A DNA stretch of 64,000 nucleotides from Macrostomum lignano. Taxonomy: Eukaryota. Made by a program: the position numbers and the translations under genes. Below the pieces are notes generated by a model. That model was not told the DNA's origin and did no database searches. It saw only the letters and a list, made by a program, of their open reading frames with translations. The stretch covers positions 1 to 64,000 of the forward strand of contig NIVC01003123.1 of the NCBI GenBank assembly GCA_002269645.1. The letters are read 5' to 3'. This document shows, in pieces, positions 16,269-42,644 of this stretch; the stretch's first letter is position 1, and each line of letters begins with the position of its first letter.

Positions 16269-16372
16269 CCAATCAGCAAACTTTCTTTGTCAGTCACTCA
16301 CTGAGCTGCCCTCGCCCTCACCCCCGCCTCCGATCCCCCCGAGCTGCCGTTTTTCCTTCCAGCTTTATAAAA
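16269..16372 (+). promoter_or_regulatory. Canonical Pol II promoter: CCAAT box, GC box, TATA box
   Basis: CCAAT at 16269-16273, CCCCGCC near 16322 and TATAAAA at 16366-16372. An ATG-free leader follows up to ATG 16509. Confidence 0.6.
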
Positions 16373-16508
16373 CGCGACACCCCCCTCGTAAAAACGTGGA
16401 GGCGAACAAAGTGGCGGGTGACGGACACAACTGGGCGGCAACCCCTCGATCCTGGTTGAGCGAGCGGCCGAGTGTTGAAATTCAGCGACAAGCCGAGCCA
16501 GAGCAACG

Positions 16509-16548
16509 ATGAAGACTGACAGCCGAGTCTGGGAGGACGCTCGTCAAA
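16509..16548 (+). CDS. Candidate alternative first coding exon of the stomatin gene (MKTDSRVWEDARQ)
   Basis: ATG with A at -3, 40 nt (3n+1), donor A|GTGAGT. The phase matches the stomatin acceptor at 42535, and a promoter lies directly upstream. Confidence 0.5.
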
Positions 16549-17479
16549 GTGAGTTCGGTTCTCGCAGCCCCCTCCCGCACAACACCGGAAAGAGGCTGTC
16601 GATCCCAAAGCAAAAATAACAGTACAGTCCAGAGCAATTCCGCTGTACTCATCCCCTTACTCATAGCGGCACAAAAGGAGCTGACGGACTCAAAATATGC
16701 TATACGACGTAAAAAAGTAGTTGAGAGCACTTTATCTTCTTTAGCCTCTAATCCTACCAGCTTGCAGACGCTGTCTGGCAAGGAGAGAGAGGGGGAGAAC
16801 ATGCGCAGCACTAGAAGAAGTCAGAGAAGGGATGAGCGCAGGAGAAAGCAGAATTGATTAACTTCAGGCCAAGAAAAACCGGCTGCTGCAGCTATCCATC
16901 AGCCTTTGTTGGCGATCGCTCAACTTTCTTTCATTTTCTCTCCCTCCATTTTTTAGCTCTTCATCTTCCTTTCCTTCTAAAAGCACAGGGGTCTGTATCC
17001 AAGTATGAAATACTTCTTTATGGACTGGCCCGGAAGTCCCTTTGTTTTATTTCTCTGATATTCTTAGTGCCAATGGACGGGTCAGCTCAGCGTTAAATGC
17101 ATCTGACTCTCGCATGGCGCCTACACTTGCATGGTTAAAAATAGCTAACAATGGGAAAATATCACTTCTGAATGCGGCTTAGTCGAACGTCTAATGGCCC
17201 TGGCGCTGAAATGCCCGTAATTAGCAAATTCAGCCGCAGACTGATAGCTCGATGCGTCAACTCCTAGTGTTTAAGCTCACCGTAAATTGCCCAAGTCCTG
17301 CTTGCAGGTCTGAGGATACAAGCGTATGGGATTGGGAAACTCCATTTGGGTCAGCGACAGCTGGCAGAATGGGGGGGGGGTGATCTTCTGAACTCTGTGA
17401 ATTGGAACCAAATCAAATTAAAGTTTTACCATAGATGTTAAAACTCTCAAATCGCTCCGTCCCCTCTCTCCCTCTGCCT

Positions 17480-18835
17480 CTCCTTCTCCCTTGTCCCCTC
17501 TCTCTATTTCCCTCTCGCCCTCCCTCAATCTCTTTCTGTCCCCTCTCTCTATTACCCTCTCGCCCTCCCTCAATCTCTTTCTATCCTCTCTCTCTCTATT
17601 ACCCTCTCGCCCTCCCTCAATCTCTTTCTGTCCCCTCTCTCTATTACCCTCTCGCCCTCCCTCAATCTCTTTCTGTCCCCTCTCTCTATTACCCTCTCGC
17701 CCTCCCTCAATCTCTTTCTGTCCCCTCTCTCTATTCCCTCTCGCCCTCCCTCAATCTCTTTCTGTCCCCTCTCTCTATTACCCTCTCGCCCTCCCTCAAT
17801 CTCTTTCTGTCCCCTCTCTCTATTCCCTCTCGCCCTCCCTCAATCTCTTTCTGTCCCCTCTCTCTATTCCCTCTCGCCCTCCCTCAATCTCTTTCTGTCC
17901 CCTCTCTCTATTACCCTCTCGCCCTCCCTCAATCTCTTTCTGTCCCCTCTCTCTATTCCCTCTCGCCCTCCCTCAATCTCTTTCTGTCCCCTCTCTCTAT
18001 TACCCTCTCGCCCTCCCTCAATCTCTTTCTGTCCCCTCTCTCTATTACCCTCTCGCCCTCCCTCAATCTCTTTCTGTCCCCTCTCTCTATTACCCTCTCG
18101 CCCTCCCTCAATCTCTTTCTGTCCCCTCTCTCTATTACCCTCTCGCCCTCCCTCAATCTCTTTCTGTCCCCTCTCTCTATTACCCTCTCGCCCTCCCTCA
18201 ATCTCTTTCTGTCCCCTCTCTCTATTACCCTCTCGCCCTCCCTCAATCTCTTTCTGTCCCCTCTCTCTATTTCCCTCTCGCCCTCCCTCAATCTCTTTCT
18301 ATCCTCTCTCTCTATTCCCTCTCGCCCTCCCTCAATCTCTTTCTGTCCCCTCTCTCTATTCCCTCTCGCCCTCCCTCAATCTCTTTCTGTCCCCTCTCTC
18401 TATTACCCTCTCGCCCTCCCTCAATCTCTTTCTGTCCCCTCTCTCTATTACCCTCTCGCCCTCCCTCAATCTCTTTCTGTCCCCTCTCTCTATTTCCCTC
18501 TCGCCCTCCCTCAATCTCTTTCTGTCCCCTCTCTCTATTTCCCTCTCGCCCTCCCTCAATCTCTTTCTATCCTCTCTCTCTATTACCCTCTCACCCTCCC
18601 TCAATCTCTTTCTGTCCCCTCTCTCTATTACCCTCTCGCCCTCCCTCAATCTCTTTCTGTCCCCTCTCTCTATTACCCTCTCGCCCTCCCTCAATCTCTT
18701 TCTATCCTCTCTCTCTAATACCCTCTCGCCCTCCCTCAATCTCTTTCTGTCCCCTCTCTCTATTACCCTCTCGCCCTCCCTCAATCTCTTTCTGTCCCCT
18801 CTCTCTATTACCCTCTCACCCTCCCTCAATCTCTC
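17480..18835. repeat. 45-bp pyrimidine-rich minisatellite (43-bp variants)
   Basis: Unit CCCTCTCGCCCTCCCTCAATCTCTTTCTGTCCCCTCTCTCTATTA, seen as a 15-aa periodicity in the ORF track. Confidence 0.95.
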
Positions 18836-19223
18836 CCAGCCTTCCTCCCAGTTTATCTTCCTCTTTCTGTCTTCTTGTCTCGCCTTCTCGCCCCCTCTCT
18901 CCCATCCTTCTCTATTCCGTCATTTTGCATCTACCAAGCCTCTATGCTAGTCTTATTACGCTCGCATATAATTAATTTTCTCCACGCCCCTATCTTTTTC
19001 TGCTTAAACATCAGCTCATTTTTTCCAATCACTGCAGTGCAATGCTTGTACCGGCCTTCACTCTCTTCCCTCTTCTGCCTTGATTCTTTTCAATTTTCCT
19101 ATCTTAGATCTTATTGAATTATTGTTTATTTGAATTCATCTGACCTGGTCCACTGATTCAGTGCAATCCTTCCACACAGTGTGACTCAATTGTGGTGGTT
19201 TCTTAGCAGTCTGTTTAATAAAG

Positions 19224-20115
19224 CTTGTAGCCTGGTGCTTTGAGCGTCTGACTCACCACTTGAAGGTCGGGGGTTCGATTCCCGATCCACTTGGAGCAAT
19301 TTGTGTCCAATGACAACTCAAGTAACATATATACTCGTATAGGACGCTACACTCGAACTCTATGGCAAATGTTTTGAAGGCAACTTTTCGCCGAAAAATA
19401 CACTACAGAGATAGGAGGTTTTAATTTTTGAGCACAAAAATTGTTTTTGCTTTTGACAGGAGGCAGATCCAGTGTTCATCTTTTGATATGTTATGCCTTT
19501 CTTATTGCTCTATAAGTGACAGACCAATTTGACATGAAAAATCGATTAATGCGTCGTTATAGCAGCATGTGAGGCACAAAATAGTGTGATTAGGACTTTC
19601 TCTGACACTGTTAAGAGACTCAATCACTGTTTTAGTGTTGAAAATCGTGAAATTTCCTTTCTCCGTAGTGTATTTTTCCGGTGAAACCTGCCTTTAAAAC
19701 TATTTCTGAACGAAAAGCTTTATGAATATCGATAGAGCAATAAGAAAGGCTCAACATATCAAAAGATGAACATTGGATCTGCCTCCTATCAAAAGCAATG
19801 TGCTGAAAAAATTAAAACCTCCTATCTCTGTAGTGTATTTTTCGGCGAAAAGTTGCCTTCAAAACATTTACCATGGATTTCGAGTGTTGCGTCCTTCTAC
19901 TTAAGTTGTCTTTGCTTGTGTCCTTGACAAGACACTTAACTCTGCATTGCTTCAGTTCACCCAGCTGTAAAATGGGTGCCAGCATTAGCTGGGGTAATTG
20001 AGGGTGTGTGTGGCGACCCCCCAGTCCTTGGACTGAACAGCCGTACGCAGCCTTCAGATGCGCCGCGCAATAGCTGCGGCTGAGCTGTCGGTTGCACATC
20101 TGCCCATTAGTGCAG
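19224..20115 (+). mobile_element. tRNA-derived SINE family 1, split by a MITE insertion
   Basis: The head carries a B-box (GGTTCGATTCC) at about 19272. The body from 19916 on matches the copies at 22798 and 46238 (reverse complement). Confidence 0.8.
19309..19915. mobile_element. 607-bp non-autonomous foldback/MITE element with ~200-bp terminal inverted repeats and an 8-bp TSD
   Basis: Arms at about 19311-19515 and 19730-19912 are near-perfect reverse complements. TTGTGTCC is duplicated at 19301-19308 and 19916-19923. Confidence 0.85.
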
Positions 20116-41398: not shown

Positions 41399-41622
41399 GT
41401 AAGGCGGGCCCTGCTGCTGGCCGGTCGGACTGACAACCTCCCAGCTCGTCAGCGATAAGCAAAATTGGGGGATAAGAGTGGGAATTGGGATCCTGCGGGG
41501 CATAAGACCAGCTGGACAGCGGGCCAGGCCAGCCTGGGAATCTTTTGCCGCGGAGGAAAAGAAATCACCACTGCCGCTGATGCTTCTCTCGCCGCCGCAC
41601 GTCAGCCAGTTGCTGCTTTTAG

Positions 41623-41766
41623 CTGGCGGCAGGCGCCAACTTGGCGAGGCCGCCGACGACATTGCCGGGGCCGGTTCCGACGCTGGCGCCAGCGGATTCG
41701 GCGGCCACGCCGGCTGTTGCGCCAAATGCTGCACAGCCGTGATCCTCAGCTGCGGCGGTCCCGGCG
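41623..41766 (+). CDS. Candidate symmetric (phase 1-1) 144-nt cassette exon, Cys-rich (xGGRRQLGEAADDIAGAGSDAGASGFGGHAGCCAKCCTAVILSCGGPG)
   Basis: Acceptor TGCTGCTTTTAG|CT and donor G|GTCAGC. The length is divisible by 3 and the frame is compatible with both the first exons and core exon 42535. Confidence 0.45.
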
Positions 41767-41787
41767 GTCAGCGGCTGCTTGGCCCTG

Positions 41788-42347
41788 TCAATCAATCAAT
41801 CAATCAATCAATCAATCAATCAATCAATCAATCAATCGATCAATCAATCAATCAATCAATCAATCAATCAATCAATCAATCAATCAATCAATCAATCAAT
41901 CAATCAATCAATCAATCAATCAATCAATCAATCAATCAATCAATCAATCAATCAATTAATCAATCAATCAATCAATCAATCAATCAATCAATTAATCAAT
42001 CAATCAATCAATCAATCAATCAATCAACCAATCAATCAATCAATCAATCAATCAATCAATCAACCAATCAATCAATCAATCAATCAATCAATCAATCAAT
42101 CAATCAATCAATCAATCAATCAATCAATCAATCAATCAATCAATCAACCAATCAATCAATCAATCAATCAATCAATCAATCAATCAATCAATTAATCAAT
42201 CAATCAATCAATCAATCAATCAATCAACCAATAAATCAACCAATCAATCAACCAATCAATCAATCAACCAATCAATCAATCAATCAATCAATCAATCAAT
42301 CAATCAATCAATCAATCAATCAATCAATCAATCAATCAATCAATCAA
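41788..42347. repeat. (TCAA)n microsatellite
   Basis: Direct reading; source of the NQSI-repeat ORFs. Confidence 0.98.
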
Positions 42348-42534
42348 CCAGTCCTCAAAGACTCACTGAATCATTTCACAAGCCGCTCAGAACCGTGTTT
42401 ATAAGCTAACATATTCGATTTTTGCTCCCTATTTGCTCCCGGCGCCAGAGTGTGACAGAGTTCTGGGCGCTGCAATGTAAAGTACAAGCAATGGCCGTTT
42501 AAACATGCACTACTACTTTTATTACCATTTACAG

Positions 42535-42644
42535 GCGCCCAACGCGGTGCCAAAGGTATCGGAGTCTGCGGCATAGTGCTTCTGTTCCTGTCCTATGGCC
42601 TCACCATTGTCACCTTTCCGTTCTCGTTGTGCCTCTGCATCAAA
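42535..42644 (+). CDS. stom: Stomatin/MEC-2-like core exon 1 (membrane hairpin GVCGIVLLFLSYGLTIVTFPFSLCLCIK)
   Basis: Phase-1 acceptor TTTACAG|GC and donor AAA|GTAAGT, with the conserved hairpin Pro and Cys residues. Confidence 0.92.

Follow-up and report, generated by a model that had tools for sequence, protein, structure and literature searches.

How does a gene begin when its first recognizable exon cannot begin it? This question is raised by a stomatin-like gene in a 64,000-nucleotide stretch of Macrostomum lignano DNA (contig NIVC01003123.1, positions 1 to 64,000; hereafter the window), in which the first exon of the conserved core, at 42535, has no start codon. A preliminary description, made by eye from the letters of the window, proposed that five short upstream islands, each opening with ATG and closing with a consensus splice donor, act as alternative first exons of this single core. 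Our analysis makes it very likely that the locus is a MEC-2/stomatin-type gene with three alternative first coding exons at the least, a probable fourth and a possible fifth, on one core.

The core gene was delineated by tblastn with human stomatin and by reading of the splice sites. It consists of six exons on the forward strand (42535–51597), which encode 266 residues plus a stop codon and are separated by introns that all have AG/GT boundaries. Core exon 1 (42535–42644) is constant, and carries the shared phase-1 acceptor, the juxtamembrane segment and the membrane hairpin. The SPFH/Band 7 domain starts in exon 2 (42809–42964), followed by exons 3 (45889–46092), 4 (48161–48216) and 5 (49105–49183), and by exon 6 (51400–51597), which carries the stop codon. 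The main SPFH-domain exons are 62–66% identical to human stomatin in tblastn. The segment encoded by core exon 1, GIGVCGIVLLFLSYGLTIVTFPFSLCLCIK, is a hydrophobic hairpin preceded by a cysteine and containing a conserved proline (…G.C…TFPFSLC.CIK), and it aligns column for column with its homologues. The core was searched against a database of 5.8 billion protein clusters. The closest proteins are Macrostomum lignano Band 7 proteins with PF01145 (91% identity, E = 3e-151), and the next closest are cestode, trematode, mollusc and crustacean proteins annotated as “MEC-2 / band 7 AGAP004871-like” (~80–85% identity). No protein with 92% or higher identity to the core is present in that database, such that the product of the window locus itself is absent there, and the gene would be an unannotated paralogue or come from another Macrostomum-like species. 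Judged by these alignments, the window gene belongs to the stomatin/MEC-2 subfamily of SPFH (Band 7, PF01145) proteins.

The acceptor of core exon 1 is strong, ttttattaccatttacag/GC (the slash marks the splice junction here and below), and the donor is GTAAGT. The exon opens at the second base of a codon and, hence, needs a phase-1 donor that contributes one upstream base. The reading frame 5′ of 42535 is open back to 42456 only and contains no Met, and within the core, Met first occurs at residue 69, behind the membrane hairpin. As core exon 1 offers no usable start codon, an upstream coding exon is required, in agreement with the preliminary description. The spliced leader of M. lignano is a 35-nt sequence, CGGTCTCTTACTGCGAAGACTCAATTTATTGCATG, that ends in ATG (PMC8629364). 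Joined directly to 42535, this leader would be out of frame and would reach a stop 14 codons later.

Five candidate first exons, 40–145 nt in length, precede the core on the same strand. All five islands were recovered as previously described: each is open from its ATG, has a length of 1 modulo 3 and ends in a GTRAG donor in phase 1. The most distal, exon A (16509–16548; 40 nt, donor GTGAGT), encodes MKTDSRVWEDARQ with the junction codon AGC (Ser). The region upstream of it (16269–16508) is a putative promoter or 5′ untranslated region, in which the CCAAT and TATA elements reported earlier are both read (CCAAT at 16269–16273, TATAAAA at 16366–16372). Exon B (22468–22609; GTGAGT) encodes a peptide with poly-Ala and RHRKYSVVDPLSEL, and with a poly-Ala/Gly tail ending in …GRHRKYSVVDPLSEL/G. 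Exon C (37824–37968; GTGAGT) encodes an acidic tail ending in …TPMKPGYDV/S, referred to below as the GY module. The product of exon D (39330–39462; GTGAGG) is His/Gln-rich, contains …VMGPMHVASVRQ… and includes the module …EP.HQ…VMGPM.V.S.R…. Exon E (41347–41398; GTAAGG), the most proximal, encodes MLGDRDKLPATGPLSEP/G. The predicted products of 280, 314, 315, 311 and 284 residues, in the order A to E, differ only in a cytoplasmic N-tail of 14–49 residues.

Conservation, rather than the counting of patterns, is in our view decisive for the assignment of these islands. Four loci were used for comparison, three from M. lignano (L001, L002 and L003) and one from the abalone Haliotis cracherodii (L004). 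The stomatins of M. lignano have three different N-termini on near-identical cores: one in P0002 (Mlig018945g1), P0003 and P0006, one in P0004 (BOX15_Mlig015086g3) and one in P0005 (Mlig019436g1). When the N-termini of ~100 homologues were compared by tblastn with the 28 kb located 5′ of the core, significant matches fell only on exons B, D and E (E-values of 6e-7 to 4e-5), and each M. lignano N-terminus corresponded to exactly one exon. The N-terminus of P0002, P0003 and P0006, MHSAAMQDRDNPPATGPLSDPG, matches exon E; that of P0004, MAPEAKPAHTRMRKYSVVDPQIDLLS, matches exon B (…HGRHRKYSVVDPLSEL/G in the window); and that of P0005, MQSMASVEPSEPSHQQVPVMGPMRVGSMRK…, matches exon D (…QEPAHQSQ…PAVMGPMHVASVRQ… in the window).

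These matches extend to the genomic loci. The counterpart of exon B is the first exon of P0004 (L001 10001–10076), with 21 of 22 nt identical across the RKYSVVDP motif, and the motif in the form RKYSVV[DN]P is also matched in tblastn by MEC-2-like proteins of cestodes and trematodes. Exon D corresponds to the first exon of P0005 (L001 21297–21414 and L002 10001–10118) and to L003 1749–1854; in a 30-nt alignment of the VMGPM stretch, eight of the nine differences are at third codon positions. Exon E is 85% identical at the nucleotide level to L003 10022–10069, with the similarity stopping at the donor, and core exon 1 is 77% identical to L003 13344–13451. All of the orthologous M. lignano exons have a length of 1 modulo 3 and a GTRAG donor. 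The order on L001 (exons at 10001, 21297 and 25993, then the core exon at 26536) is the same as in the window, and the paralogue L003 has the same exon order. Thus, the M. lignano loci and the window have in common the RKYSVVDP, VMGPM and PATGPLS[DE]P modules in the same order, the phase-1 core acceptor, the GTRAG donors and satellite-rich introns. They differ in that the exon sequences have diverged and that the RKYSVVDP exon lies 16.5 kb from the core, compared to 20 kb in the window.

The GenBank annotation of Mlig_3_7 was made from RNA-seq and de novo transcripts (PMC5730564). As the M. lignano models derive from assembled transcripts, the assembled RNA of this species links each of these exons to the core. 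By sequence, then, exons 22468, 39330 and 41347 are orthologous to, and collinear with, transcript-derived M. lignano first exons. Conservation of the exon peptides in relatives, proposed earlier as a check on the array, was found for these three. Comparison of 14–42.7 kb with the M. lignano loci by blastn and tblastx was swamped by satellites; after masking with Tandem Repeats Finder (TRF), exon 41347, core exon 1 and an element resembling a short interspersed element (SINE) survived, and the short exons other than 41347 were detected by targeted tblastn. The concatenated N-terminal peptides alone had no database match at E ≤ 10. With core exon 1 appended, the specific matches were the known M. 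lignano proteins only.

The same annotated products bear on the idea that the upstream islands belong to other coding or non-coding genes located between the stomatin gene and its upstream neighbor, a G-protein-coupled receptor (GPCR) gene. The 28-kb interval is long and contains many open reading frames of 90–170 residues on both strands. However, the nine longest reading frames of 16–42 kb are without a Pfam domain, Rfam and tRNA scans of the window were empty, and the annotated products place the matching M. lignano exons on the stomatin core. We give this idea hardly any credence.

How much the islands say by their form alone was assessed by enumerating every island of the type ATG…open…GT[AG]AG of at least 30 nt on the forward strand of 16269–42534, with unique donors counted. 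GT[G/A]AG is the dominant donor motif in M. lignano (PMC8629364) and, therefore, the donor pattern used is appropriate. One donor is in phase 0, nine are in phase 1 and four are in phase 2. The other regions and strands of the window contain 16 phase-1 islands per 101.5 kb, which corresponds to ~4 expected in the interval versus the 9 observed (binomial P = 0.017, Poisson P = 0.026). Mononucleotide shuffles (~9 islands per phase) were rejected as a null model since they represent repeat-rich sequence poorly, and the real-sequence background was used instead. The preliminary description had cautioned that its search was by eye and with phase in mind; this caution was justified, as the phase-1 excess is weak.

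Three other phase-1 islands on the forward strand have codon scores at the background level and no homologue, and are probably due to chance. The first, 27927–27993, ends at GTGAGC and contains a (GT)n run. The other two, 32130–32502 and 40650–40791, had been listed as weaker candidates, a proposal that we do not uphold; in the latter, the GC content at third codon positions is 0.34, versus 0.81 in the core. An additional acceptor suggested at 41623 also looks like a chance occurrence, as no acceptable phase-preserving donor follows it.

With phase-1 islands only about twice the chance level, three islands of identical formal features that look like noise, and a case for exon 16509 that is one of form, it could be argued that only the proximal exon 41347 is used, with the distal islands being either relics in decay or ATG..GT islands due to chance. 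Exons 22468 and 39330, however, keep an ATG, an open frame, phase 1 and a consensus donor, and are conserved at the protein level with M. lignano exons present in assembled transcripts (22468 also with cestode and trematode proteins). Relics would not retain all such features, and we consider this explanation very improbable. Several alternative first exons that feed one core remain the preferred interpretation.

The sequences immediately 5′ of the five ATGs are informative about where the transcripts start. Neither a [TC]TNCAG acceptor nor a polypyrimidine tract was found directly 5′ of any of them, and the absence of upstream acceptors fits true first exons. The alternative is a single long pre-mRNA that starts far upstream (e.g. 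at ~16.4 kb), with the 5′ ends of the isoforms set by spliced-leader trans-splicing or by a common non-coding leader exon. Trans-splicing is widespread in M. lignano, where 30–39% of genes receive the leader and many units are transcribed as precursors that contain several trans-splice sites (PMC5730564; PMC8629364), and weak AG dinucleotides are present a few bases 5′ of the ATGs at 41347, 37824 and 16509. Yet [TC]TNCAG is also the trans-splice motif that is missing from all five sites, the M. lignano gene models start at these exons, and the sequences 5′ of the ATGs are not conserved as acceptors between species. A single long precursor is, thus, unlikely.

Exon C is probably also a first exon, based on its coding character and on its C-terminal motif. 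Of its six frames, the annotated one scores best for codon usage, and in no other candidate does the annotated frame clearly beat the other five; as the codon-usage log-likelihood is otherwise insensitive to frame in these GC-rich exons, it was taken as weak support. An end in G[YF][DN][VILA] is unique to 37824 among the 399 ATG..GTRAG islands of the window and the four loci. In the isoforms of molluscs and crustaceans, no dipeptide is more common than GY at 10–20 residues ahead of the hairpin Cys; it occurs in 21 of 90 unique segments, such as …KIGYDVTT/ANPEG, …KPMGYDAQ/ANPEG and …AGYNIE/NG. The …KPGYDV of exon 37824 directly precedes the junction, consistent with a conserved exon-end motif, …GY[DN][VIA]. 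A purine-rich element of 21 nt, GAAAAATAAGAT[A/T]GGAAGAAA (37735–37755, forward strand), is located 69 nt 5′ of the exon C ATG. It recurs with 20 of 21 identities at L003 9947–9967, 34 nt 5′ of the PATGPL exon, and in a weaker version in L001. None of 100 shuffles matches it with three mismatches, and its alignment score is 37, compared to a shuffle mean of 19.8 (SD 2.3). This element may be a promoter or 5′ untranslated element, or a transposon fragment.

The chances that exon A is a genuine first exon are roughly even. It has a positional analogue in L001 (5423–5459), which begins with ATGAAG, is 37 nt long and ends in phase 1 at GTGAGT, but the two show no significant conservation at the nucleotide level. 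Its codon test gave P of about 0.13, from 13 codons only.

Several observations weigh against the array as a whole or against parts of it. The island pattern by itself is modestly above chance, and among these GC-rich exons only 37824 has a codon score that distinguishes the frame. Exons 37824 and 16509 have no counterpart in L001–L003: 37824 gave no match there, including in a search for a GY exon, and 16509 has no homologue in these loci, among the homologue N-termini or in the protein database. The GY motif was defined after the data had been seen. A resemblance, noticed by eye, between the 16509 promoter and L001 at ~5.2 kb was discarded, with a score (25) no better than those of shuffles (mean 19.3, maximum 29). 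The support within the window consists of sequence comparison, and separate promoters and cell-type-specific use are proposals that go further. On balance, the earlier claim of alternative first exons on one core is supported for three of the five islands by orthology and, indirectly, for a fourth by the GY motif, with 16509, which is without conservation, as a candidate.

The five peptides were initially described as unrelated, and this is correct for nine of the ten pairs. The exception is the pair 22468/41347, in which both members end in PLSE[LP]G. In pairwise Smith-Waterman comparisons against shuffles, eight of the pairs score no better than chance, 16509/39330 is marginal (2.3% of the shuffles reach its score) and 22468/41347 beats every shuffle by virtue of its common six-residue end. 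At the DNA level, these ends (22585–22609 versus 41377–41398) are identical in about 15 of 19 nt, as read by eye. The likeness of exons B and E may stem from gene conversion, from duplication of part of an exon or from a functional motif common to both. Exons A and B also both start with ATGAAGAC (MKT-), and exons C and D with ATGAGCGGC (MSG-); these common starts may be due to chance, to a common start-codon context or may be the trace of a common origin.

The layout is less novel than the preliminary description implied, since it is also annotated in M. lignano, abalone, snails, shrimps and lobsters. By comparison of these gene structures, the window joins a known, ancient protostome gene design. 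The Haliotis cracherodii orthologue, “band 7 protein AGAP004871-like” (L004), has RefSeq isoforms X1–X8 and spans 93 kb. It contains at least five ATG first exons (at 10001, 50961, 83940, 84028 and 84178) in addition to two GY cassette micro-exons. All of these upstream exons end in …G/GT and join core exon 1 (85717), the start of which is GT+CAC. Thus, as in the window, several ATG first exons (distributed over 76 kb in the abalone) supply one core in phase 1, at nearly the same position, about 11–12 residues ahead of the hairpin Cys. The tails are likewise short and show no relationship to one another, and a GY-containing N-terminal module is present. The abalone GY modules differ in being encoded by optional internal cassette micro-exons in phase 1 (L004 37457–37480 and 42723–42770; GPTGYSMS and YSRFSTITGYQTEG), rather than at the end of an ATG exon, and the GY module may, thus, move between exon types across lineages. 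Beyond GY, the abalone tails cannot be aligned with those of flatworms, and RKYSVVDP is seen only in flatworms. Isoform sets similar to that of the abalone are found in Biomphalaria, Physella, Penaeus, Panulirus and Homarus, and RefSeq lists up to 14–16 N-terminal isoforms in shrimps and crabs.

The precedents initially cited for the array apply in part. C. elegans mec-2 has 17 predicted isoforms with the SPFH core in common, and isoforms Q, M, K, H and D have their own first exons (PMC12284166). Alternative first exons are, thus, annotated in this gene, but the neuron-specific isoforms that have been studied differ mainly at the C-terminus, arising by mec-8-dependent splicing of intron 9 (PMC12284166). 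In addition, C. elegans MEC-2 is extended at both the N- and the C-terminus by long segments that the window protein lacks. The analogy with protocadherin and UGT1 loci is valid for the constant downstream exons (six, 42535–51597), but not for the variable ones. In the protocadherin and UGT1A loci, the variable exons are large, paralogous and arranged in tandem, and encode one type of domain, each with a homologous promoter. Those of the window are short (40–145 nt), encode unrelated disordered tails and are neither paralogous nor tandem duplicates. The locus is, therefore, a case of ordinary alternative-first-exon usage and not a variable-exon cluster.

In the arrangement that we propose, a 5′ region of about 20–26 kb contains the first exons, each of which starts at an ATG that no acceptor precedes, ends in a phase-1 GTRAG donor and would be able to splice to the single acceptor at 42535. 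The resulting proteins would have the hairpin and the SPFH domain in common and would exchange the cytoplasmic N-tail. Each exon may have its own promoter, to which the missing acceptors 5′ of the ATGs and the CCAAT and TATA elements 5′ of exon A point, and the choice of exon may be specific to cell type. The tails could represent regulatory or targeting modules, such as RKYSV, which fits a basophilic (PKA/AGC-type) kinase consensus, or the GY module.

More tentatively, and with somewhat less than an even chance of being correct, the N-tails may constitute an ancient, conserved set of modules that are exchangeable at one conserved phase-1 intron. In favor of this, RKYSVV[DN]P is conserved from Macrostomum to tapeworms and flukes, and GY occurs in flatworm, mollusc and crustacean orthologues. 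If true, N-terminal isoform-specific regulation of stomatin/MEC-2 would date to early protostomes. Stomatin/MEC-2 proteins regulate DEG/ENaC/ASIC and other channels, and no part of these proteins is less conserved or less well understood than the cytoplasmic N-tail. Macrostomum is amenable to transgenesis, and conserved N-tail modules, such as RKYSVVDP across the Platyhelminthes, are testable candidates for isoform-specific regulation. For annotation, the gain is a corrected multi-isoform gene model for the locus and not a new kind of genetic system.

The surroundings of the gene are rich in repeats. TRF masks 27,153 of the 64,000 bases of the window (42%). Satellites are present at 24095–25951, 40066–40276, 41788–42347 and many other positions, and include (TATC)x465, (CTGA)x53 and (TCAA)x140, the last of which sits in the intron directly 5′ of core exon 1. 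Arrays of the (CTGA)n type are also found in M. lignano loci (e.g. L001 9187–9324). A 412-bp unit is tandemly duplicated (35986–36774; 1.9 copies, 99% identical) in the intron between exons B and C. Two inverted copies of an element of ~155 nt, which resembles a SINE or a miniature inverted-repeat transposable element, flank exon B (19916–20070 on the reverse strand and 22837–22992 on the forward strand). These copies are 95% and 83% identical to L003 6106–6278, far above the similarity of the exons, which suggests that the element was recently active or is shared, or that the window comes from M. lignano itself or a very close relative.

Other genes are located on either side. Upstream, the rhodopsin-family GPCR gene on the forward strand was detected as two exons (7733–8152 and 13155–14072; 7tm_1, E = 1e-9 and 5e-19, respectively), which are split by at least one large satellite-filled intron, and the gene ends at 14072. 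Downstream of the stomatin gene, an intact-looking reverse-transcriptase reading frame of 438 residues (54854–56167, forward strand; RVT_1, E = 2e-28) probably belongs to a retroelement of the long interspersed element type. It is followed, on the reverse strand, by exons of a zinc carboxypeptidase (Peptidase_M14) gene at about 59018–63175, again with satellite-filled introns between them.

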